Shown: piece after piece, positions 7,331 through 62,948 of the stretch
Layout: the number at the start of each line of letters is the position of its first letter
Numbering within the stretch: position 1 is the first letter of the stretch
NCBI RefSeq assembly: GCF_021028975.2
Contig: NC_059427.1
Coordinates: 10,726,001 to 10,790,000 of the forward strand
Source: Sphaerodactylus townsendi
Taxonomy: Eukaryota
Reading direction: 5' to 3'
Length of the DNA stretch: 64,000 bases
Notes under the pieces: model-generated
Told to the model about the DNA's origin: nothing
Databases searched by the model: none
What the model saw: only the letters and a program-made list of their open reading frames with translations
Position numbers and translations under genes: made by a program

Positions 7331-8388
7331 CAGGAACTGGCAGCTATAACATGATTGACAGTCCACATGGTCTATTCACACATACTGCAACATATAGTTT
7401 GGCCCTTACTTGGTAGCTTATATTAGCTTTTTCAATAATGCATGGTTAGCCTATCTGCCCTCCAAAGTAGCTCAGGCACTTGTATGTCATTTTCTCCTCA
7501 CAGTTCTAGGAGGTTGGTAATGCTGAGAGAATGCAGCACATCCCAAGCCATTCAATATACTCCATGGTAAAAGTGTGGATTTGAATCCAGACCACCCCAT
7601 ACTAACCCTTACACCAGACTGGAGCTAATTCACAAAAATGGACTGCCCAAGTCAGGTATTGGGATTAAAATGGTTTCCAAACCGGCTTGTTTAGACAATT
7701 TAGTCAGATAAGCTGTTGAAGTTGAGCTGGTCTCTTGGAATAGAGAAATTGCTTAGGCAGTTGTCACAATTATCTGCAGGGTTTTTGATCAATAGTCCCT
7801 TTTGCCAGAGCTTAGGGAGCTCCTTGCTTTAGTGGGAACTTGCAGACGAGGCAGCAGGAAGACGGCAAATGGGTGGGAACTCTGAATGTCAATGAGATCC
7901 AGCGTAGTGTAGTAGTGAAAAGTAGTGGACTCTAATCTGGAGAACTGGGTTTTGATTCCCTACTCCTCCACATGAGCTGCAGACTATTATCTAGTGAACC
8001 AGATTTGTTTCCCCGCTCCTCCATACAAAGATTGGGCTAGTCTCAGTTCTTCAGAACTCTCTCAGTCCCACTCACTTCACAAGATGTCTGTTGTGGGGAA
8101 AGGAAGGGAAGGAGTTTGTAAGCTGCTTTGAGACTCCTTAGAGTTGAAAAAAGCAGGGTATAAATCAAAACCCTTCTTGATTAGTCTGATAAGAGTGTTG
8201 AAGGCTGGAATAATCCTATTCCTTCCAACACAAGGCCAAGTGAAAGGTCAGAGCTGTGCTGGCAGGGGATGATGGGGATTGTAGTCCATGAACATCTGGA
8301 ATGCCATAGGTTCGCCACCATGGGTAGGGTTACCATTCTCCAGGTGGGGACTTTGAAGAGTGGAGCTTATGGCTTTGCCCAGGGTTAA

Positions 8389-8700
8389 GGAGCAGCAGTG
8401 GCGTAGGAGGTTAAGAGCTTGTGTATCTAATCTAAAGGAACCGGGTTTGATTCCCTGCTCTGCCACCTGAGCTGTGGAGGCTTATCTGGGGAATTCAGAT
8501 TAGCCTGTGCACTCCCACACACGCCAGTTGGGTGACCTTGGGCTAGTCACAGCTTCTCGGAGCTCTCTCAGCCCCACCTACCTCACAGGGTGTTGTGAGG
8601 GGGGAAGGGCAAGGAGAATGTAAGCCCCTTTGAGTCTCCTGCAGGAGAGAAAGGGGGGGATATAAAGCCAAACTACTACTACTCTCCTCCTCCTCCTCTT
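8389..8700 (+). mobile_element. Squam3-like SINE
   Basis: Near-identical to 2308-2611. Confidence 0.8.
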
Positions 8701-10419
8701 TATGCCTAACTGAGGTCCCTTCCCTCCCCAAAACCCACACACTCCCATAGCTATATCCCCAAATCTTCGGGAATTTCCCCAACCTAGAGTTGGCAGTCCT
8801 AGCTGTAGGAGTCCCCTAACTGTAGGAGTCCCCTTTATTGAGCCTATTGCTGCTTTTGGAATTTTGAGGGAAATGGCATCCAGAGAAGGTGGGGTCTGTC
8901 ACAAAGTGATTGCCAGATCTGAGAAGGCGGACTTGTCACAAAATGGCTGCCATGGGAGGCCAGTTACAAAATATTGGGAAGACTTCAGCCAGGTTTTCTT
9001 GTGATTGAGGCAGCTATTTTCCAAATGGGTGCTCCTTTTAGACACAAAGTTGATGTCTACTGCCCTTCTCCAATGATGCATGGGAAAGCCAAAGTTGGCC
9101 CCTTGTTTTGGGAAATAAACAAGAATATATGTTCGTTGACACCACGTTGGAGATTATATTTTTGCCCAGGGTTAAGGCAGAAAGCCTACTCAGTGAATAT
9201 TTTTACACTTCATGTCATACAGTTGAACACAGGGCAACGAAAACCAGTCTTTTAAAATATTAATTCTGTTGAGACTGCTTCACAGTATCTTAAGTGCTTA
9301 TAGGTCTGATCTTGATTTATGCTGTAACTTTGCAGGAGCACAGAGATCTACCAAGATTTATAGCCCATGCCATCCAGGTCTTGTCTAGTGGCTGCTAGAG
9401 AGGTAATAATTAGGAGAAGCCTGTGGCCCTTGTGTTGTGCATCTGACCCTTCCGGGGCATTGAGTTTCCTCAGAATTTCAGTATGACCCTTCCTTCCTGT
9501 TTTAGAGCAATGAAAATTTATATGGCTAATGAACCACCTATCAACATGCATTAAAACAACAGTGGATAATCAACAGAAGCATAAAAACAACAGCTTTTCT
9601 TATTGTCAACTTATGACTCCATAGGGTTTTTAAAGGCAAGAGATTTTCAGAGGTGGTTTGCCATTGCCTGCCTCTGCAGAGGAAAGGGGTGGGAAATCTT
9701 CCTGTTCTTCCTCGGATATGGGCAACATCCATAAAATCAACAAATCAAGAGGGCAGAAAACACCTATTCCAGCAAGGTCACAGACCCGCTTCCATCCAGA
9801 AAGCTCGAAAGCCGGGCAGAAAGAAAATTGCACTGCCCCACTGATTGTGATGATTGCCAGTAAGCCTAAATATGCATATTTGGTCCCCTTAATAGAGACT
9901 TAATGGATGGAAATAAGTAGCTGAAGCTTTCCATGGCTTGGAGGCAAATCATATATCTGGTAAACCTCCATTAAGGGGGCAGGGCCTTTTTTTTCATCAG
10001 ACAGTTGGAAACCACCTCTGTTTCAGATACTGACTGGTATAGTGCCCCAGTATGTGGAGGTTTTACTTATATTTTTCATGAGCAATTGCTGACCAATCCA
10101 AAAGCTGAGCATTGACTTTCACTAAACTTCACAACTAGCTGAGGTACACTGCACCTGAACATGGAGGATTCTTTCAGTTACCATGACTCATACCCACTAA
10201 CAGACAGACACATCTTTGTCAGGAAAATAAATTGTATTAAGCCAAGAGCTATCCTCTCAAAGCCAGCGGGGCATAGTGGTTAAGAGCAGTAGGATCTAAT
10301 GTGGAGAACTGTGAAGAACTGAGTTCGAGTTCCTGTTGGGTGACTTTGGGCCAGTCAAAGCTCTCTCAGAACTTCCTCGGCCCACTCAGCAGCAGCCGAT
10401 GGCAAAACTTGCTGGATTG

Positions 10420-10562
10420 TATTAAATTAATCGGTATTAAATTAATTTGTGCAATATCAATGCAATAAAATTGCAATATTAATGCAATTAATTTTGCAAT
10501 ATCAATGCAATTAATTTTGCAGTATTAATGCAATTAATTTTGCAATATTAATGCAATAAAAT
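10420..10562. repeat. AT-rich quasi-palindromic minisatellite, unit of about 23 bp (TGCAATATTAATGCAATTAATTT)
   Basis: About 5 degenerate tandem units are directly visible. Confidence 0.8.
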
Positions 10563-10599
10563 TCATCACCTTCGTCAATTTCGCCAACCATCAGAGACC

Positions 10600-10920
10600 A
10601 TGGAAATATTCGCAAAAGCGCCCCGCCCCCAAGAGAGGAGGGATCCACATAAATGACGTCATTCCACAGCCACATTACCAAGACAGCCACCCCTCCCGCC
10701 TTGAAATGTTTAAGGACCGCCTAGGAACGGGCACTCTATGGCGTTAACTCTTGCAGCTCTCTCGTAGCCGTGATTAGAAAAACACGCCCAGAGAGCCTGG
10801 GAGGAAGAGAGGCAAGGGAAGGAGAACGGCTCAGAAACTTTCTTGCAATGCGATTGTTCGTTTCTTTGGACAATTAGATTGCAGCTTTAAAAAGGAGAAA
10901 ACAGGGCGGAAGTCAGGTTC
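10600..10920 (+). promoter_or_regulatory. CpG-rich promoter of the Harbinger-derived gene
   Basis: GC box CCCCGCCCC at about 10621, full CRE TGACGTCA at about 10654, GGGCGGAAGT (ETS-like) at about 10904, and raised CpG density. Confidence 0.6.
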
Positions 10921-11226
10921 CTTTGCTATGTTCCCAACAGCAAGGCTTAGCTAACATTGTTTCGGAATTTGTTTTGTGCTTGCAGTTCTCATGGTGTGCC
11001 TTATCCGTCAATCGCTCCAGCTTTATTGGCATGAGCATTGGCCACCAATATTTTTGTGTTAAAATAGTTATCGATCTGGTAGTGATTTGAGAGGTTTTGG
11101 GGGGTTGGGGGGACACTCACAAAAGTTGCAAATAAGGTGGTGTGTATGAGCGAGGGAAAGAGGGCTTCCCCCACCTTTTAGAAAGAAATCAACCTTGTGT
11201 AGGTGTTTTGTGTGCTTCTGGGCATC

Positions 11227-11793
11227 ATGGAGAACCTAGAGGCAATCATCCTGGTGATCCTGGCCACCCACAACCTGGTCCGCCTGCACTTGCACCGCAG
11301 CGGCGTTGCTGCCCGGGCCCGGAGAACCATGCACCGGGTCATGGCAAACCACATCTCCCTGCTGCACCAGCTCCTTCCAGATATGTGTCCCGACAATGAG
11401 ACCAGGCTGATGGTGGAAGAGCTGAACGCCGGCCCGCATCGCTTCTGGTCCCGTCAGATCAGCCAGGACTGGTGGGAACGGGTGGTGCTGGAGACCTGGG
11501 ACCCCAACCAGTGGCTCCAGAACTTCCGCATGACCAAAGACACCTTCTTGGAACTCTGCGAGAAGCTGCGGCCGGAGCTGCAGCGCCAGACCACCACCAT
11601 GAGGGCCCCGCTCAGCGTGGAGAAGCGGGTGGGCATTGCCCTCTGGAAACTGGCCACCACCGAGTGCTACCGGTCTGTGGCCAACCACTTTGGGGTTGGG
11701 CGGTCCACCGTCGGGGAGGTCTTCATCGAGGTGTGCCTGGCCATCGAGAAGCTGCTTTTCAAGAAGGTGGTGTCTCTTGAAGACCCAAAAGAG
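11227..11793 (+). CDS. PIF/Harbinger transposase-derived protein (HARBI1/ALP1-like), exon 1 (HTH region)
   Basis: WLQNFRMTKDTFLELCEKL...LSVEKRVGIALWKLAT...YRSVANHFGVGRSTV matches the Harbinger transposase N-terminal HTH. Phase-0 donor GAG|GTAG at 11793/11794. Confidence 0.88.
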
Positions 11794-12687
11794 GTAGTTG
11801 CTTTTGTGTCATGGTGGCCTTGAGTGTCGCGTATCGTTCGGTAATAATAATAATAGTAATGCATTTTTCACTTTATTTGGGACAGGGGTCCTCAGCGTGA
11901 CCAGGGCTTCATGGTGCCCACAAGTGTTTTTGGAGAGTGGGTGGGACCAAATAGGATTTTTGTCAATCATGGCTTCTGACTGACCACTAGAGGTTAGATT
12001 GGCTTTAAGATTTTTTAAAATGTTGCTTAGGCTTCACCAGGATCTGTTCTGTGCTACTGAAGGTAAGCTGCAGCAGTCATATTGTGACTGTCTTAGCTTC
12101 TTGTAATCATTTTATGACTGTGCCCACCACACTGTGCCAGAATTGCAATGCCAGGGACTCCAATTTAGGAAATGAGTTCTGTGCTTTCTATCTGAGGGGC
12201 TCTACAAATAAAAATATCCACAAAGAGGGTATATCATTTGTGCAGGCTGGGAAGATAAAGGGCCTTGGAGCAAGTCAAGGAGACTGGCTGCAACTGTGGT
12301 GTTGCAAGCTAATTGCTGCAGGGGCCACTCAGTTTAGACCCAGCCAAAAGTAGGTGTCAACTCACACACTGCTTCTCCCAAGAGGAGGCTGTGAGACAAC
12401 ATCCATCATTGGCACAGCTGGCAAAGTCTGGATGGCTCCTAAGCACTGGCAGAGCTACTGGGACTTGGCTCTGCTTGCTCCTGGATGCCAGTGGCCCTTC
12501 AGTTCAGTGGGCTACCAGAAACTTTCCCTATAAGTGAAATGGCCAGGCTGCCCCAAATACAGCTTTTATTTTTTAAAAATCAATTTCCTTCTTTCCTTTT
12601 TAAGAATCCATAACATGGGTTTTAAAGAAATTGATAAAAATGAATAATGCCTTTACAAAGCACAAAATGACCAAGAGATATACTTCT

Positions 12688-12911
12688 TGGGGTGCTGTGT
12701 GGTTTCCGGGCTGTATGGCCATATTCTAGCAGCATTCTCTCCTGATGTTTCGCCTGCATCTGTGGCTGGCATCTTCAGAGGACCCAGCCACAGATGCCAG
12801 CCACAGATGCAGGCGAAACGTCAGGAGAGAATGTTGCTAGAACACGGCCATACAGCCCGGAAACCACACAGCACCCCAGTGATTCTGGCTGTGAAAGCCT
12901 TCGACAATACA
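12688..12911. mobile_element. Penelope pLTR-derived inverted-repeat remnant in the intron of the Harbinger-derived gene
   Basis: Both arms match the pLTR of the element at 18591-19301. Confidence 0.75.
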
Positions 12912-13196
12912 TTGAACATCTCTATGGGGAGAAATTGTTCCAAGACACACGGAGACTGGAAAAACTACAGCTCAGATATACTTCTTATTTTACTCCCCTT
13001 ATACAGTGCTTTCTCCCCCAAGGCGGCTTCCTGGTATGTTGTTTTCTCCTTCATTTTATCCTCACAACAACCCTATATCTAGTCCCCTTGTGGGGGTTAA
13101 ATATGGCCAAAATGTGAAAAGAATGAAGATGACGTTGTTAGGAAAATGAGGGGATATATGGGAATGTCTTAATTTCTCGATCTTTCCATTCTGAAG

Positions 13197-13898
13197 GTTA
13201 TGGAGGGCTTTGCAGAAATGGGGTTTCCCAACTGTGTGGGCGTCGTGGACACAACCCACATCCCCCTCATCTGCACATTTCGAAAGGGCACCAGCGTCAG
13301 CCAGAAAGGGTTTTTCCCCATGTCGATGCAAGGGACTGTGGACCACAGGGGCCGTTTCATTGACATTGAACTCAGCTGGTGTGGCAAAGATAAGGACGCC
13401 TCCTTCTTCCAAACCTTGGGTCTCTGTGAGGCAATGGACCAAGGATCGTTCGTCCCCGGGAACCCTACGATGACCCTCAGTGATGTGGAGATTCCCCCGC
13501 TGATCTTGGGTGATGAGTCCTACCCTCTGAAGAAGTGGCTCATGACACCCTTCACTGGCAACCTCGACCCACGTAAGGAACGATTCAACTCCCACCTGAG
13601 CGACTGCAGGAAGATGGCCGGACACGCTTTCGGGCTGCTGAAAGGGCGGTGGCGATGCCTGGCTACCCGATTGGAGGTCGCGGAGGAGAACGTCATCCCC
13701 GTTGTGGTGGGCTCTGTTGTGCTTCACAACATATGTGAGAGTCGTGGGCATGCCTTGCTCGATGGGCCGTGGGTCCAGGACGGAGCGTGGGACCAAACTC
13801 CAGAGGGACACTTGAAATTCCCTACATCCACAGAGGACACAAGGAATGGGAACCAAGTGCGGGAGGTCCTGGCCAGCTACTTCATGAGCAATTTCTGA
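13197..13898 (+). CDS. Harbinger transposase-derived protein, exon 2 (DDE_Tnp_4-type nuclease domain)
   Basis: Acceptor TTCTGAAG|GTT in frame with exon 1. Motifs GFPNCVGVVDTTH, QGTVDHRGRFID, ILGDESYPLKKWLMTPF, FGLLKGRWRCL and VLHNIC; stop at 13898. Confidence 0.9.
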   Translation, partial: VMEGFAEMGFPNCVGVVDTTHIPLICTFRKGTSVSQKGFFPMSMQGTVDHRGRFIDIELSWCGKDKDASFFQTLGLCEAMDQGSFVPGNPTMTLSDVEIPPLILGDESYPLKKWLMTPFTGNLDPRKERFNSHLSDCRKMAGHAFGLLKGRWRCLATRLEVAEENVIPVVVGSVVLHNICESRGHALLDGPWVQDGAWDQTPEGHLKFPTSTEDTRNGNQVREVLASYFMSNF

Positions 13899-14513
13899 TT
13901 TTGATAGGCCTTGATTGAAGCAAGGCCATTGTTTTAAATTTGTACTTCGGGTGAATTCAGACCCACTATTTACTCTTGTAAGGAAAGAGAAGACAGAGGA
14001 AGGTTGCGAGCTATGGTATGAAGCTAATTTTACCATTCTGAAACTCATTATATCTAAATGTGTCATCTTTTTATTTTGCCATTCTGGGTGGCTTGTGATC
14101 CTCCCCTGATTTCTTTGTGGTTGTCATGGTGATTCATACCTCAGGGCCTAGCTTCCAGGCAAGGGGCTTTTAAAGGGGCAGGATACAGCCTGGCTAGTTC
14201 CCCCTACCCCCAGTTGTCAACTCTAGCACTCATTGGATTCCTCTGTCTTTACAAAAGAGTGGCTGTTTGACAGAAGCTAAAGACAGGCGTTGAGGAGGAA
14301 AGCGCTTGCCAACCAGATATTTCCTAATTTTAAAAAATAAACCATTTGGAAACCATTCGACTCCATTGAACTTTTTTTTTTAAATTGAAATCAGCTTGGA
14401 TGTAATTTGTGTTGGTGTTAAGGCTTCCAACCTCCAGGTGGGACCCAGAGATCTCCCAGAATTACAGCTGATCTCCAGATGACAGATATTTAGTTCCCCT
14501 GGACAAAATGAGG

Positions 14514-14998
14514 AAAGGAGATGGCTGAGGGGGGATATGATTGAAGTCTATAAAATTATGCATGGGGTAGAAAATGTTGACAGAGAGAACTTTTTCTCTC
14601 TTTCTCACAACACTAGAACCAGGGGGCATTCATTGAAAATGCTGGGGGGAAGAATTAGGACTAATAAAAGGAAACACTTCTTCACGCAACGTGTGATTGG
14701 TGTTTGGAATATGCTGCCACAGGAGGTGGTGATGGCCACTAACCTGGATAGCTTTAAAAGGGGCTTGGGCAGATTTATGGAGGAGAAGTCGATTTATGGC
14801 TACCAATCTTGATCCTCTTTGATCTGAGATTGCAAATGCCTTAACAGACCAGGTGCTCAGGAGCAGCAGCAGCAGGAGGCCATTGCTTTCACATCCTGCA
14901 CGTGAGCTCCCAAAGACACCTGGTGGGCCACTGCGAGTAGCAGAGAGCTGGACTAGATGGACTCTGGTCTGATCCAGCTGGCTTGTTCTTATGTTCTT
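14514..14998 (+). mobile_element. CR1 LINE 3' end
   Basis: Encodes LRGDMIEVYKIMHG...TRGHSLK...RKHFFTQRVIGVWNMLPQEVV, the CR1 ORF2 C-terminus, plus 3'UTR. Confidence 0.9.
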
Positions 14999-15573
14999 AA
15001 AATGGCTGGTTTTGGAGGCTAGACTCTATGGTATTATACCATGCTGAGGTCTCCTTCCTCCCCAGCTTCCACGTTTTCTCCCAATACACCTCTGGACTGA
15101 CAGGGGCTCAAATGTTTACAGATGATTTCTGTCAATGCACGTGTGTGTGTGTGTGTTTTGTGCCATCAAGACAGCTGACTTGTGGCAAACCTTCAGGGTT
15201 TTTTAGGTAAGAGACGTTCGGAGGCGGCTTGCCATTGCCTGCCTCCCTGTTACAACCCGGGTACTCTTTGGAGTACTTACCAGGGCCCACCCTTCTGAGT
15301 TTCTGAGACCTGATAGCCTACATTTATCCAGGCCAGGTCTATATCTATAGAGAGAGAAGTGGGGGGAGTTGTAAAAACTAAAAATTCAACGTAGGGAAAT
15401 GGATTTACTGTTCATGTGCTTTTCCAGACAGGGTATCCAATCCCACATCTCAGGTTGGGGAATCTGATGTCTGGAAAGGGAGGAGTATTACACATACAGA
15501 GTGGATGATATAATCTCTTCTGAGGGCAAGGATGTCCCCCTACCCTAAAAGCTCCAAAATGCTGGGATCTAGG

Positions 15574-16013
15574 CAGTGGTGGGATCCAAAAAGTTTAGTA
15601 ACAGGTTCTCATGGTGGTGGGATTCAAACTGTGGTGTGTAATGGTGCGCCACACGATGGGAGGCTGGGCGGGGCATTCGTAATGGAGGCAGCGATGGCCA
15701 GGCATTCCAGTGAGGGCATTCCAGTGAGGGCTGTGCGCAAGGATGCAGCCATTGCATTGCACGGGTCCTTAGGCTGAGGAAGCAGATATGCACGCAGGCA
15801 CAGGCTGCTCACATGCACGCCAGTGCATCTCCTGCCTAGACTGCTTCAGAGTTCCTGCTGCTAGCTACTGGCTTGCTGGAGAGAGAGGTATAGAACTAAA
15901 GCAGGCAAAAATCACATGGCAAAATCACCAATTAGTAACCCCCTCTTGGCACACACAAATAATTAGTAACCTACTCTTGGGAACCTGTGAGAACCTGCTG
16001 GATCCCACCTCTG
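15574..16013. mobile_element. hAT MITE (TIR CAG[T/A]GGTGGGAT)
   Basis: TIRs with a perfect 8-bp TSD, gatctagg. Confidence 0.9.
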
Positions 16014-16991
16014 GATCTAGGAGAACTCCAGGAACTGCAGGAAAAAGAGAGTCTGAAGTCAACCCCCAACACTGCTGGATCCCACACTGGAAGGGAGAAA
16101 ATAAATGGGGACCGGAGGCTGCGAAATGCACGTAGTACTCATCCAAAGGGGTGGGGGTGGGGACAGTTGATTGTTTTCTGAAAGAAAAGCGAACTATTGA
16201 TTGTTTTCTGAAAGTTATCAATTCCTTCAGGTAGCACTTTCAGAGGTAAATGACAGAGACTCAGTTTCTCCATAGAACAAAATACATTGGCCGATTACCC
16301 ATGGCTGGCTCTGCCCTGCCCTTGCCCTGCTCTGGGCAAAAGTCACTCCAGAAGTGCTCTCACTTTCCACAGGGAAAGCGAGAAGCACAGGCGGGGCAAG
16401 AGGAAGCACGCTGGGACAAGAAATCTTCCCTCGATATGCTTGGAGTGCTGCAGGGAGGAAGTCTGTCTGGACAAGACTTTTTTGCCCTTTCATGTTTCTG
16501 TTCCCAGCATGCACTGGGGAGGAAGTGTGTCTGAACAAGATTTCTTGCCCTGACACACTCCACATGCCAGTGTGTGGCAGCCGCCCCATGGGTAATTGGC
16601 CATTGTGTTCAATATGGTTGGGTCTGAAACAGACCAAACTTACAGGCTACAGGTCCAAATATAACATGGTTCAATCCTGAGGGGTGTCTGGAAATATTGC
16701 TAGGCCCCCCGAATCTCTGAATTCTGGATACTGGGACCGGGCAACCCTAAACATTGTGAAAAGCTTCTATGGTTTCTCCAGAACACAGTAAAAAAAACCC
16801 TACTGATTAATGGCAGATCTTGTCAAACATGGTAGCTTCAAGGTAATATTTCCCTAACTGACTTATCTTCTCAGGAACCCAACTACATCCACCAAGGTGC
16901 CATATGCTCCCATGAACATTGTGTGTTGGTTTTTCTGTTGCGGATCCCCTTATTGGCTGTTAGAACTGAAAGAATCTTTAAAACACACTTA

Positions 16992-17132
16992 GGCCCCTTC
17001 CGCACACGCAAAATAATGCGTTTTCAAACCACTTTCACAACTGTTTGCAAGTGGATTTTGCTATTCCGCACAGCTTCAAAGAGCACTGAAAGCAGTTTGA
17101 AAGTGCATTAATCTGCATGTGCGGAATGAGCC
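16992..17132. mobile_element. PIF/Harbinger-type MITE
   Basis: TIRs GGCCCCTTCCGCACA / TGTGCGGAATGAGCC with a 3-bp TSD, TTA. Copies at about 29085-29226 and at 36612-36752. Confidence 0.8.
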
Positions 17133-57552: not shown

Positions 57553-57818
57553 CTATCCCACGACAGCCTGGGACTCCGCGCCTTCCTGCACAAGTCTGCA
57601 CTCCTCCATCCTCAGCTCGGACCTGCATCTTTTCTCGGCCATCTGATCCCTGTGGTGCTGCTGGGAACTCTCCACCTTACACTCAGCCTGCCCCACCGTG
57701 CACTTGGCAACATTGCTGAGCACAGCCACCTGCCTCTTCTGTTTCCCTGCACTGGTGGTGCAGGTGGCCAGGGACATCTGCCCCACTGGCATCTCCTCTG
57801 GAACCCCAGGGTCGCTTC
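57553..57818 (-). pseudogene. Candidate terminal exon of the Myb/SANT-like gene
   Basis: Acceptor CCTTTCAG|GA and an open charged, helical-looking frame (KQKRQ...QMAEKRCRSELRMEE). The link to the Myb exon is inferred. Confidence 0.35.
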
Positions 57819-58206
57819 CTGAAAGGACACAGAACATTAATGTCTCCCCCCCCACACTCCAAGCCAACATCTAGACACAAAAGTTGCTTCGGGTGGCCCC
57901 TGTTCGGCCAAAACTGGAAACCCCTGTGGTCAGGCGGCAATGTGCATGCATTGTCCAAAATGTGGGGCAGACACTTCACGTTGCCTGTCCATTTTCAAAG
58001 TCAAGACCACTTTCTGGAGGTACAAGACATAATACTGTCTCCCCGGAAAAAGCATAACAGCACCTGATAGCAGACTTGAGCGGTACTACTCAAAGTAGAC
58101 AAGTGGGCATATACAGCAAACTCCCACCTTCAAGAAGAAATTCTCCACACAGCAGATTCTTTCAAAAGAAGGCTTTTACCGTAGAGTTGCTATATGTACA
58201 TGATAC

Positions 58207-58443
58207 TACCCTGTTTCCCCTAATATAAGACATCCCCTAAAAATAAGACATAGTAGAGGTTTTGCTGAAGTGCGGAATATAAGGCATCCCCCGAAAGTAA
58301 GACATAGCAAAGTTTTTGTTTGGAAGCATGCCTGACAAACAGAACACAGGAAAAATAAGACATCCCCTAAAAATAAGACATAGCACATCTTTGGGAGCAA
58401 AAATTAATATAAGACACTGTCTTATATTCTGGGAAACACGGTA
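58207..58443. mobile_element. Tc1/mariner (Tigger/Tc2-like) MITE
   Basis: TA-flanked TIRs CCCTGTTTCCC / GGGAAACACGG with internal ATAAGACA repeats. Confidence 0.75.
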
Positions 58444-59161
58444 TATACAGAGTAGTTTAAACAGTCCAACAAAGTTGCTCCGTGGGACTACTTGTTCCCT
58501 AGGAACAACCACTTTGGTGCATTGCTTATTTGCTTATATACATGGTTCCACCCAATCACTGTAAAGGTCACTACAACTGGAATGAACGGTCTGCTTGTTC
58601 TCCAGCTGTCAGATCATTCCTTTCTTTGCTGACTCATGCTGCTGGATGCAGATCACTGCTGATCTAACTGTCTTAGTAGCACCTACCTTCAATGGCTCAC
58701 CTAGGTGCTGGGGTGGCTCTTCTGCAGCAGCACCTTCCCAAGGAGAGAGAAAATGGGCAACTCAGTATTGTCCCCACTACCAATTCACCTCAAAACGAGC
58801 AACAGGATCTCTCCCACAATTGTGATTCCCCACCTCGTAGCAAGTGACTGAAAACAACCACACATTGTCCATTGTTGGGGAACAGAAAACCTTTTGAAGG
58901 TGGGGCAGAAGGAAACCATTTTTGTGATGGGGGGGATTGTGGTAGTGGGATGAACTATTGGTTTGGTTTCACAATACTTTCATGTAAAACGTACATAAAA
59001 CTCCCACAACAATAGCCATCCTGATACCTAAATTGTAGACAACTGTGTTGCACCCCCCTCAGCTGAGCCAGGCCAGGGCCCGGGCCACCATCTCTGTGCA
59101 GAGGTCCTGGGCTGCATGGCATTCCAATGGCGGGCAGAAATGGTGCAGCCTCACCTCAGAC

Positions 59162-60198
59162 TGTTGGGATCTTGCAAGTGTCTGTCACAACTCAGTTATA
59201 AAAGGGTTAACTGTATGTATACATGTTGCTGAAGTCACAATTCACGACCTGATCTATTGATTAGCTATTGGTCAGTGAGATAGCCATTGATTACATGTTA
59301 GTGAGCACGTACATCTGAAGTTATAAAGTCAACTCTGTTTCTCTGTTTGAGCAGACACGACACCAGAGAGGAGACACGAAGTAGACATTATGTGAGACAG
59401 CAGATAGGTAGCAAGATGTAACCAAACGTACTGTAATGTAGATGTGTAACAGGAAAGAAAGGATTTCTTATTTTTTTCCTCGAAGTAGACATTATGTGAG
59501 ACAGCAGATAGGTAGCAAGATGTAACCAAACGTACTGTAATGTAGATGTGTAACAGGAAAGAAAGGATTTCTTATTTTTTTCCTCGAAGTAGACATTATG
59601 TGAGACAGCAGATAGGTAGCAAGATGTAACCAAACGTACTGTAATGTAGATGTGTAACAGGAAAGAAAGGATTTCTTATTTTTTTCCTCGAAGTAGACAT
59701 TATGTGAGACAACAGATAGGTAGCAAGATGTAACCAAAGCGTGCTGCCAGTGTAGATGTGTAACAGGAAAGAAAGGATTTCTTATTTTTTTCCTCGAAGT
59801 AGACATTATGTGAGACAGCAGATAGGTAGCAAGATGTAACCAAACGTACTGTAATGTAGATGTGTAACAGGAAAGAAAGGATTTCTTATTTTTTTCCTCG
59901 AAGTAGACATTATGTGAGACAGCAGATAGGTAGCAAGATGTAAGCGATGCATTGTAATGTAGATATGTAGCAGGAAAAGAAAAGGATTTCTTTATTTTTT
60001 TCCCTCTGATAGACATTATCGTGGAGACAGCAGATAGGTAGCAAGATGTAATCCAAACGTACTGTAATGTAGATGTGAAACAGGAAAGAAAGGATTTATT
60101 TTTTTCTCCGCGTAATCCTCCCTTATAGTTAGTAAAGTATAAAAAGCAACTGAGAATCTGTCTCTTCTGTCCTACTCTGCTAATATATATACATAACA
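59162..60198 (+). mobile_element. Probable solo LTR expanded by an internal tandem array
   Basis: TGTT...AACA termini, flanks cagac/cagag (5-bp TSD with one mismatch), TATAAA at about 59324 and AGTAAA at about 60131. Confidence 0.5.
59377..60108. repeat. 104-bp tandem repeat, about 7 copies
   Basis: Units start at 59377, 59481, 59585, 59689, 59795, 59899 and about 60005. The first three are identical. Confidence 0.95.
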
Positions 60199-61820
60199 CA
60201 GAGCTGCATGAACCCCCAGCTGAAGGGGGGGGGACACAAAATAGGCAGCTGGTGGTGGCTGCTCCATATGAGGTCTACTCGGGAAGCAGGAAATGTATGT
60301 GCCTACACCAAACTCAAAGGAGAAAATAGGACCTGGTGTCTCCCCCAATTTCAGCTGAGTTCTGTACGTTTCACATTTGCCCGGCAGTCTATTGGTTGGC
60401 AGTTGTTTGCAGCAGAAGCAATAATAATATAATACCCTGCAGAGCCCCCACAAACCAGTAATGGCAGCAAAATGGAGGCTGCAAGGGAAAGATAACGGGG
60501 AAGGGGCCGGACAGCAACATGGGATGAGAGTGTGAGGACAAAAGAGAGGAACAGCTCCTTTGTGGGAGGGGAAAAGGCGGGACGGAAGAACGTGTTTGAC
60601 ACATGGTCTACTTTGCCTGCAAAGAGGGGAAAGGTCAGGTTTTCCCTGCATAAAGTGTGGTTGCTTTGAAACAGTTGCATAACTGAAAATCTAACCAGGC
60701 AAATAGATCAGTTGCAGACACCCACCCACCCCCCACCCCCCAAAAAAATCAACTTAAGGCAAGGAGACATTTCATGTACAATTGGCCAGTATCCGGTTCC
60801 ATTTTATACTCCCAACAAACTTGTGACTTAGGTTAGACTGAGAGCACGTAACTGGCTCAAAGCAACACAGTGAGCTTCCACAGTGCAGTGGGGATTCAAA
60901 CCTGGGTTTCCCAGATCCCGCTACAACACTTTAACCACCACACAACACTGGCTATAATAATATTCCGGTGCTGAATTAAAAATTAAAAAAATGCGAAAGG
61001 CCTGTTGGCCCAGGGGAGTGAGGGTAGCCACTTCCAGGAGACAGGAAGGGAAACCTACCATGTGGAACCCCCGCCCCCATCAAGCTTAATCTGCAGCCAC
61101 AGATGTAATGGAAAAAAAGAAACAAAAACTATCCTCCATGTAAGGAAGTCACCATCATTATTCCCCAAATGAGTCAAAAAAGGTAGGTTCGTGTGAGGGT
61201 GGAGTGTGATCATGCATGTTGACCAAACGTACCTGAGGTTGCAGAATCAGACCACCAGAAATCGCTGCTGATGGGCGAAGTGGAGTCCACTCTAATGGTT
61301 GTGATTTGCCAGGACCTGTAGGTATCGATAAAGAAGTATGAATAGCAAAAATACAGAAAGCAGCACCTGTCAGGAAGAAGAGAGCCGAACATACTTTGAG
61401 TTGCTTTCAACCATAAAGAGCCTTTGGGGATGAGGCGATTATAAAAAAATTCTAGGCAATAAATAAATAAATAAAAGTTTACCAACTTAAAGGGTAGGGT
61501 TGTTCGGAATAAAAACAAATAAACGTTATGCTGCTCTGTTATATTTACAGTACTCACAATGCACTTAAGACTACATCTTGACTACATATTCTACTTCTTT
61601 CTCTCCAAGTACTCCAGTCTACTCTATTCTGCTAGAACAAAGAAAACAAGTTAACTTTCTAACTTCTGATGGGAATGCTTCTAACCTGTAACCAGCGATT
61701 ACCTGACTGACCAATACCAATAGCTAATCAACAGGTCAACACATTACAATATCACCTGGGCACCCTGTTTACATACAAACAGATGTTTCACCACTGGTTG
61801 TGACAGACACTTGCAAATAC

Positions 61821-62183
61821 CTAAGGATTTCCCCCATGGGTTTGGGGATCCCATCGCCTTGCAGAATCCAATCCAGCTCTGAGTAGAAAGGGCTGGTTCT
61901 GGGGGTCTTAAAGCAATAAGTGTTGTTTGCAAAAGCCCTCTTGTGCTCTTCGAGTCGCGAATCCCCGCGATTTTGGCCCGACTTGCTCCAGCGCACAGAA
62001 CGCAATAGCCAGCGCCGAGCGCCATTGCTCGGCAATTCTTTGGAAGCCATCGCAGGTCCTTTTCCGGCGGGAGGGTCGGAGGACCTCCTCCATCTTCTTA
62101 CTCCAAACCCGTACCAAGTCCTTGGTCTCCCTTTCTGTCCAGGGCCCCCCACCTACTCCCTCAGAAGCGTCTCTCGACTGCAT
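61821..62183 (-). pseudogene. Myb/SANT-like (trihelix; Harbinger ORF2/MSANTD-type) DNA-binding domain exon, frameshifted
   Basis: Read across frames: WTERETKDLVRVW...FQRIAEQ / MALGAGY...RAKIAGIR / EEHKRAFANN...RTSPFYSELDWIL, in the motif order of Myb_DNA-bind_4. GCCATG start in CpG-rich DNA. Confidence 0.75.
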
Positions 62184-62948
62184 GGCCGAAAAGGAACTCA
62201 GCACTTAGAACACGCGGCGCTTTAAAAGGGCGCGGGAGTTTGGCGAGCTCTTCCGGGTAGAACGTTCCCGGGAGCGCCTTTTCCCGCCTCTGCAGATTGA
62301 CCAATCCCAGTGCGACTACCAAAAATAGTGAGGTGGGCGGGGCCATGGGAAACGGGGCAAACGGCGGTGCAGCATGTAAAATCGCACTTGAGGCGGGGAG
62401 ATGAAAAAAGCTTTGTGGCAGAAACGCCATCAGTCTCCAATGCACTCTGAAATAAAGCAAATCCAGAGAGTTCTGCCCCGGGAACGTCCCATTCTTTGGG
62501 GAAGAAGCTAGGATTTAGCAATGCAGTCTATAAAATTCACTGGAAAGGAACGGAGGATTTATTTATTTGCGCGACCTCTCTTGGAGGCTCAGGTTACCTT
62601 TCGGGCTGGATTTAAGTTTGTCAGCTTCTGAGCTGGCCTTTGTTTTTGTGCCTGCATAAAAGGATAATCGAAGCGAGCTAGCAAACCGGGGGGGTGTTTT
62701 CTGTCTGGTCAGAGTTGGCCTCAGCTGTGAAATGACCTCTCCCAGGGAGGTTTAAAGTGTGCCTCTGAGCATGTGCCAATTGCCCTTTTCTGGACCCAGA
62801 GGCCCCCCTTATCTTTCTTGCTAAATGAGCATCTGTTAACAAGAAGGAGTCCGCTTCGCTAGTTAGGAGACTCTGAAATTTCTTCTCCCCGCACCAATTC
62901 TCTCCGTGCTCAGAGTCTCCTCTTCACAGGTTTTCCCGGAGAAGTTAG

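Follow-up and report, generated by a model that had tools for sequence, protein, structure and literature searches.

The vertebrate literature searched describes only one host gene, HARBI1, as having come from a Harbinger transposase; it is found from cartilaginous fishes to mammals and was formed ~500 million years ago (Mya) (PMC9392472). In Arabidopsis, ALP1, an accessory of Polycomb repressive complex 2 with ALP2 as its partner, stems from a separate, plant-specific domestication; its triad residues were lost only in angiosperms, and basal land plants keep the triad (PMC4671723). HDP1/HDP2 of Arabidopsis and DPLG/DPM of Drosophila are independent domestications as well, and in both the transposase was co-opted together with a Myb-like partner (PMC5339849, PMC9710019). 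Here, we describe a PIF/Harbinger-derived gene of squamates, found in the gecko Sphaerodactylus townsendi within a window of 64,000 nt (assembly GCF_021028975.2, contig NC_059427.1, forward strand, 10,726,001-10,790,000; all positions below are those within this window). It is present in one copy per genome, has a fixed two-exon structure and a conserved position among SCAN zinc finger (SCAN-ZNF) genes, is under purifying selection, and is transcribed and spliced. We take it, with a probability of roughly 0.7, to be a squamate host gene made from a domesticated PIF/Harbinger transposase in which selection protects something other than the catalytic triad and whose protein would act as a non-catalytic adaptor.

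The coding sequence lies on the plus strand in two exons. The 189 codons of exon 1 (11227-11793) begin with an ATG in favorable context (A at -3, G at +4), and the exon is followed by GT at 11794; exon 2 (13197-13898) comprises 233 codons and a TGA stop, with AG ahead of it at 13195-13196. The intron between them (11794-13196) is 1,403 nt long, has GT..AG borders and is in phase 0. Searches returned a full-length reference from the same species, RefSeq XP_048345372.1 (P0270; 422 amino acids), with which the exon translations were compared one by one: exon 1 is 100% identical to residues 1-189 and exon 2 is 100% identical to residues 190-422, and the reference carries the exact predicted joint, ...EDPKE/VMEGF... 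The borders and this identity bear out the 422-residue, phase 0 gene model proposed by a first-pass annotation of the window, which was made from the letters alone. The spliced model is thus already annotated in RefSeq, where the protein bears the automatic name "ALP1-like"; names of its orthologues, among them LOC129329411 of Eublepharis and LOC118081312 of Zootoca, are also automatic ("ALP1-like," "putative nuclease HARBI1," "uncharacterized LOC..."), and a literature search on six of their accession or locus names found no paper mentioning them. A within-species polymorphism was seen in the gene: at 13582, runs X1 and X4 have A in place of G, which would change Arg318 to Gln, a position that also varies between species.

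Exon 1 encodes residues 1-189, which comprise the N-terminal helices and a helix-turn-helix (HTH) region similar to DUF8040 and HTH_Tnp_4, and exon 2 encodes residues 190-422 with the RNase-H-like DDE_Tnp_4 domain. The match of exon 2 to the Pfam model DDE_Tnp_4 covers profile positions 1-158 of 158 with 75.9 bits (cut-off 24.8; E 3.6e-21), and XP_048345372.1 as a whole scores 73.9 bits; by this domain, the gene belongs to the PIF/Harbinger superfamily. The match of exon 1 to HTH_Tnp_4 is weak (E 0.016), and PF26138 is precomputed on the orthologue proteins. An AlphaFold2 model built with 85 sequences (predicted local distance difference test, pLDDT, 81) combines a helical hairpin at the N terminus with a helical HTH region and an alpha/beta core. 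Its residues 94-382 match the structures of Tn5 transposase (Z 10.4, 248 residues aligned) and piggyBac (Z 9.8), with further matches of the core to Tn4430 TnpA (Z 8.2) and ISCth4 (Z 7.6); the Foldseek matches are weak (E >=0.0096), and nearly all of them are transposases or integrases. The model therefore predicts an RNase-H-like DDE transposase fold. A sequence search of the PDB returned no relative, and the PDB holds no solved structure of a Harbinger transposase.

When exon 2 was searched against 1.84 billion representatives, one full-length relative was found at 72% identity, a 423-residue protein of Anolis, and the next matches were at <=53%. The orthogroup was gathered by searching with this Anolis protein and reading the 90% clusters. 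It contains one protein of 422-423 residues (427 in Hemicordylus) in each of at least 16 squamates: six geckos (Sphaerodactylus, Gekko, Euleptes, Heteronotia, Paroedura and Eublepharis) and, outside geckos, Podarcis (three species), Lacerta, Zootoca, Rhineura, Elgaria, Varanus, Hemicordylus, Anolis (two species) and Sceloporus. The clades covered are Gekkota, Scincoidea, Lacertoidea, Anguimorpha and pleurodont Iguania. Amino acid identity within the orthogroup is 78-93%; proteins that are at least 77% identical to it come from squamates only, and the next matches do not exceed 53%.

The gene structure is shared as well. In nine genomes, a phase 0 GT/AG intron of 1.1-3.2 kb follows the homologous residue, which is residue 189 (residue 194 in Hemicordylus, whose orthologue is five residues longer at the N terminus). 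The acceptor is the same in L001 and L002, two genomic Logan contigs that come from other species; their intron cannot be aligned to that of the window, and the exon is ~80% identical. At least 16 squamates have an orthologue of 422-423 residues whose intron sits at the same place, in keeping with the squamate domestication that the first-pass annotation had inferred.

In the window, exons for SCAN and C2H2 domains lie on both sides of the gene, placing it inside a SCAN-ZNF cluster, as had been noted from the letters. This neighborhood recurs elsewhere: among genes called within 10 kb, SCAN-ZNF neighbors were found in 8 of the 9 other species examined (Anolis, Sceloporus, Gekko, Paroedura, Eublepharis, two species of Podarcis and Hemicordylus), and in Eublepharis and Paroedura the order and orientation of the neighbors (+/+/-) are those of the window. 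The exception is Varanus, in which the sole gene called within 10 kb is piggyBac derived. Each of 10 assemblies has a single orthologous locus. The synteny comparison across squamates that had been suggested thus places the orthologues at a conserved genomic position in distant species, as expected of a domesticated gene.

These observations bear directly on whether the gene is simply a mobile Harbinger copy, be it autonomous or only lately immobilized. It does have a full-length transposase-like open reading frame (ORF), and related families have recently been active in geckos, as the near-identical paralogues of Eublepharis indicate. However, in three DNA-like runs (X1-X3), the contig depth of the exons equals that of the unique flank (20, 62 and 34, respectively), so the gene is single-copy, and dispersed copies were not found. 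Terminal inverted repeats, none of which had been recognized in the first reading, are also missing from the region searched: within 8000-17000, no inverted repeats bracket the gene, and the only spanning pair (19 nt, 79% complementary) is at chance level. No Myb-like ORF adjoining the gene is present in the ORF lists; small flanking ORFs were outside the Pfam scan. Together with a single locus per genome in a conserved neighborhood, a ratio of nonsynonymous to synonymous substitution rates (dN/dS) of 0.09, and 78-93% identity maintained across ~200 million years (My), these results already contradict a mobile copy, and we regard it as practically untenable.

The coding sequence is under strong purifying selection. 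The median NG86 dN/dS is 0.094 (range, 0.06-0.17; 45 pairs with dS of 0.13-1.9), far from the value near 1 that was named in advance as counting against domestication. Under a codon model (GY), omega is lower in exon 1 (0.04) than in exon 2 (0.12). Sites change 0.95 times on average across the orthogroup tree, and 59% of them are unchanged throughout. Variability is lowest in two stretches, the HTH region (residues 101-180; 0.2-0.45 changes per site) and residues 341-360; the N-terminal HTH region is the most constrained part of the protein.

For the family columns of the catalytic triad, we used 295 relatives outside the orthogroup; the orthogroup alignment had 19 rows from 16 named species, and 12 coding sequences were examined at the codon level. 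In the 295 relatives, the columns of D207 and D256 are Asp in 91% and 87%, respectively, and the column of residue 331 is Glu in 89% and Gly in 1%; thus, these are the conserved acidic positions of the family. The earlier assignment of the triad was therefore right, and the motifs of the window protein are as it had recorded them: VDTTH, SVSQKG, GKDKD, GDESY and RKMAGHAFG. Asp207 (codon 13248-13250), the first triad position, is kept here and in all 19 orthogroup proteins, encoded by GAC or GAT in 12/12 coding sequences. Asp256 (codon 13395-13397), the second position, is kept here and in 16 of the 19 rows, and it is Asn in both Anolis species and Sceloporus. The third position (codon 13620-13622) is GGA, encoding Gly331, in the window and in Gekko and GAA or GAG in the 10 other coding sequences; at the protein level, it is Glu in 16 of the 19 rows, Gly in Sphaerodactylus and Gekko japonicus and Lys in Rhineura. 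Among the differences listed for four runs from three samples, none falls in codon 331. The window protein therefore lacks an intact D-D-E triad.

Gly331 of the window is a lineage-specific A-to-G transition, and the same change occurred separately in Gekko japonicus; the two are independent, because the closest relatives in the tree—Euleptes, Heteronotia and Paroedura—keep Glu. Together with the E-to-K change in Rhineura and the D-to-N change in anoles and Sceloporus, the triad has been broken independently at least four times. On the orthogroup tree, three changes fall on position 331 (91st percentile of variability), one on D256 and none on D207. Other replacements are older: Y222S, N224S, R225Q and H255K, at four sites that 75-90% of the family conserve, map to the stem of the orthogroup, and the ancestral motif changes shared by its members are DGTH to DRTH (G208R), YxNRKG to SxSQKG and HD to KD. 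Like ALP1 (PMC4671723), the domesticated gene has a single conserved intron, and in both genes the early-branching lineages retain D-D-E and later ones have lost one or two triad residues. Since triad residues were lost repeatedly while 59% of sites never change, catalysis looks dispensable for the selected function, as far as sequences can tell. In rice PING, mutating one residue of the DDE triad drastically lowers transposition (PMC4671723); by analogy, the window protein is very probably inactive as a nuclease. The earlier description of the gene as probably nuclease-dead therefore holds for the protein of the window and fits the repeated loss of the triad, but it does not extend to the whole gene, given Glu331 in 16 of the 19 rows.

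Several observations weigh against our interpretation. The D-D-E triad is intact in 12 of the 16 named species (15 of the 19 rows), so nuclease activity could be the selected function in most lineages, and both D207 and D295 are invariant in the orthogroup. The lineages in which an orthologue has not been seen (see below) suggest that the gene is dispensable in some of them, or was missed there. The identification of run X4 as RNA, which underlies the evidence of splicing given below, is a judgment from its coverage pattern; the first-pass annotation had suggested looking for reads across the 11793/13197 junction, and although exon-shaped X4 coverage and intronless contigs of a relative were found, this joint is absent among the joints listed.

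The intact triads and the invariance of D207 and D295, together with the predicted DDE transposase fold, are what could be expected if the protein were a working nuclease in most squamates, as is presumed for HARBI1, with a triad that has survived in most species for ~200 My and with Gly331 and the changes in Gekko, Rhineura and the pleurodont iguanians being lineage-specific inactivations or tolerated hypomorphs of a function that depends on catalysis. However, lineages with a broken triad are under the same overall constraint as the others (pairwise omega of 0.10-0.13 for Sphaerodactylus, Gekko and Anolis), E331 ranks in the most variable 9% of sites, and Y222S, N224S, R225Q and H255K are present in all members of the orthogroup. 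Moreover, within the catalytic core, the model is least certain of the loop that holds D256, where pLDDT is <50 (residues 253-258). On balance, we consider a conserved nuclease function unlikely. The four lineages amount to a natural "mutagenesis series," in which the triad was broken and overall constraint did not change; from this series, one can learn directly why a domesticated Harbinger transposase is retained.

It might also be suspected that the gene is decaying in Sphaerodactylus townsendi and that E331G was the first step of pseudogenization. The window protein has further private changes beside E331G (T208, F216, Q260/T261 and L336), and some lineages of squamates seem to have lost the gene. 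Against this, the ORF is intact, omega relative to Gekko is 0.11, the terminal branch (0.063-0.07) does not exceed those of Paroedura or Heteronotia in length, and the locus has RNA-like, exon-shaped coverage. Decay therefore appears very unlikely.

The coverage in question comes from run X4 (S. townsendi), in which depth is 0 over 10552-10735, ~74 over 10959-11795, 4.6-17 in the intron and again ~74 over 13195-14478. The edges of the X4 contigs fall at the exon borders 11795 and 13195, and the exon 2 contig has 26 extra letters at its 5' end that are not found on the intron. Because the contigs stop at exon borders, exon depth exceeds intron depth, and these 26 letters are not intronic, X4 has the pattern of spliced mRNA. 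In addition, two Logan contigs of a squamate relative (1.4 and 2.0 kb) contain the whole coding sequence (422 and 430 amino acids) without the intron. We conclude that the gene is transcribed and spliced, the RNA nature of the runs being judged from their coverage and contig patterns.

How the non-catalytic adaptor would have arisen and would work can be outlined as follows. A PIF/Harbinger transposase was probably domesticated before the radiation of crown squamates, ~200 My ago; four residues in the neighborhood of the active site were replaced on the stem, and triad residues were then lost in at least four lineages, including E331G here. Binding to DNA, to a Myb/SANT-type partner or to both would fall to the HTH region (residues ~100-180) together with the RNase-H-like scaffold. 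By analogy with HARBI1-NAIF1, ALP1-ALP2 and HDP1-HDP2, such a partner would bring the protein into a nuclear complex. A function in chromatin or in partner binding is what we infer from these comparisons.

HARBI1, whose partner is NAIF1, is the obvious comparison within vertebrates. Both genes are transposase-derived, single-copy, conserved host genes with DDE_Tnp_4, and both may be expected to act through a Myb/SANT-like partner (PMC9392472, PMC9710019). However, the 422-residue squamate protein differs from HARBI1 in its age (~200 My versus ~500 My) and distribution (only squamates versus jawed vertebrates), in branching with sauropsid Harbinger lineages, in its repeated loss of the triad and in the replacement of four motif residues in all members. 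With 100% support, the orthogroup forms a clade on a long stem (0.57); its inner branches are very short, and its branching largely agrees with the phylogeny of squamates. The sister group consists of squamate sequences only, has long branches and includes KRAB fusions and a recent burst in Eublepharis; further out are turtle, crocodilian and other squamate lineages, then fish, and then invertebrate and fungal sequences. The orthogroup is thus nested among sauropsid Harbinger lineages, to which it is 40-53% identical.

Some RefSeq records of the orthogroup are automatically named "putative nuclease HARBI1," and one may ask whether the gene is the squamate orthologue or a recent duplicate of HARBI1. 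Its place in the tree and its squamate-only sister clade speak against this, as does its phyletic distribution: HARBI1 spans cartilaginous fishes to mammals, having formed ~500 Mya (PMC9392472), whereas the orthogroup is seen only in squamates and so lacks the presence across jawed vertebrates that an orthologue of HARBI1 should have. None of 380 relatives, including the 150 best of 1.84 billion representatives, had the HARBI1-type motifs searched for, although this is a weak test. Because the orthogroup nests among sauropsid lineages and HARBI1 is reported in all jawed vertebrates, independence from HARBI1, which the first-pass annotation had proposed, is well supported indirectly, and identity with HARBI1 is most improbable. 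The resemblance to ALP1 also has its limits: ALP1 belongs to a separate domestication in plants, plant ALP1-like clusters (rank 26) appear in the Atlas ranking below the animal clusters, and the name "ALP1-like" of the squamate protein reflects similarity only. The squamate gene would thus be a second, independent and much younger domestication of Harbinger in vertebrates after HARBI1, seen only in squamates.

Among the annotated proteins of snakes, agamids, tuatara, turtles, crocodilians and birds, no orthologue was seen, which points to a squamate origin with later losses.

HDP1/HDP2 and DPLG/DPM resemble the squamate gene as independent domestications of Harbinger transposases. Unlike these systems, it has a sole in-window candidate for a partner, a weak and apparently frame-split Myb/SANT-like exon on the minus strand (61911-62204, within 57553-62250), which lies 48 kb downstream in the same SCAN-ZNF cluster. 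Its match to Myb_DNA-bind_4 has 19.5 bits (cut-off, 27), language-model (Atlas) features agree with this assignment (0.91), and the second half of the domain is in another frame, so the exon may be frame-shifted or decayed. We found no homologues of this exon in the range of 54-171 residues and no copy of it in the orthologous loci (10 kb on each side). Among SCAN genes, ZSCAN20 is listed as having a Myb domain derived from Harbinger (PMC9392472).

A 2025 preprint describes an "endogenized, transcriptionally active Harbinger element" that anchors the squamate harbiTRIM locus and is proximal to TRIM, butyrophilin and PRY-SPRY genes, with antiviral TRIMs (bioRxiv 10.1101/2025.06.23.661133). Like that element, the gene described here is squamate-wide, ~200 My old, transcribed and apparently domesticated, and the orthogroup is the only conserved clade in our sample that contains all three groups shown in the harbiTRIM locus figure (gecko, iguanian and lacertid). 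Unlike that element, it has SCAN-ZNF genes as all the genes called within 10 kb in 8 of the 9 other species, Eublepharis included. No PRY-SPRY domain was found in the Pfam-scanned ORFs (>=146 amino acids) at 33.8-60.7 kb of the window, and the nearest TRIM cluster noted in the S. townsendi genome is 6.2 Mb away. The squamate gene may or may not be the element of the preprint, the text of which gives no identifiers in either version. One could imagine a still-linked two-component module that includes the Myb/SANT-like exon at 61911-62204, and/or a harbiTRIM anchor; either way, a fast-evolving ZNF/TRIM defense region would have the former transposase as its locus-specific adaptor. We find this doubtful.

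The noncoding parts of the gene were delimited from conservation and X4 coverage. A block at 10738-10850 on the plus strand, just 5' of the start of RNA-like coverage, contains segments that can be aligned between Sphaerodactylus and Gekko, and partly with Hemicordylus, in surroundings that cannot be aligned; it is a putative proximal promoter. The upstream motifs listed by the first-pass annotation are present as letters: a GC box (10620-10629) and a CRE-like TGACGTCA (10654-10661), together spanning 10620-10661 on the plus strand, where the aligned segments of the orthologues stop short, and GCGGAAGT at 10906-10913. Directly upstream of the putative promoter, at 10440-10557, is an AT-rich minisatellite with a 23-nt unit (5.1 copies, 87% matches). 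The 5' untranslated region (UTR) extends over at least 10959-11226 (plus strand), as judged from an X4 contig of 837 nt with a depth of 74 on 10959-11795, and the 3' UTR extends over at least 13899-14478 (plus strand), to the end of X4 contigs with depths of 54-74. Coverage in X4 resumes at 15095-15500, past a high-copy repeat.

The transposable element remnants that had been reported in the intron are represented by a foldback (inverted-repeat) transposon at 12688-12878, which has no strand assigned and whose 87-nt arms are 95% complementary and 17 nt apart. It is part of a very high-copy repeat family: over 12576-13127, the summed contig depth is in the millions in all four runs. A second extremely high-copy repeat, with summed depth also in the millions in all four runs, occupies 14416-15151 in the 3' flank.

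Beyond the orthogroup, the tree contains other Harbinger-derived proteins of sauropsids. Fusions of KRAB with a Harbinger transposase are annotated in many reptiles and kiwi (P0293, P0337, P0328, P0124, P0125, P0285, P0289, P0279 and P0323); like the gene described here, these host-transposase fusions (sensu Cosby et al.) come from the common sauropsid Harbinger stock, but they have an N-terminal KRAB domain and are 40-47% identical to the squamate protein, which has no added host domain. P0293 and P0337 (Sphaerodactylus) and P0328 (Paroedura) each share a chromosome-sized record with the orthogroup gene of their species. Two further squamate clades with long stems and very short tips (P0304/P0309/P0310/P0324/P0325 and P0311/P0313/P0314/P0318) look like additional independent domestications; one of them includes snakes, and the other includes agamids and a lacertid. 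As the tree shows at least two more conserved squamate clades and several KRAB fusions, sauropsids appear to be a rich and largely undescribed field for Harbinger domestication.

Near-identical Harbinger paralogues in Eublepharis macularius (P0296, P0297, P0299, P0305 and P0319), with tip branches of 0.001-0.02, indicate that the leopard gecko has a recently active family, which belongs to the clade sister to the domesticated gene. Elsewhere in the window, a tandem array at 59377-60109 (104-nt unit, 7 copies, 92% identity) gives rise to a spurious repetitive ORF of 235 amino acids on the minus strand.

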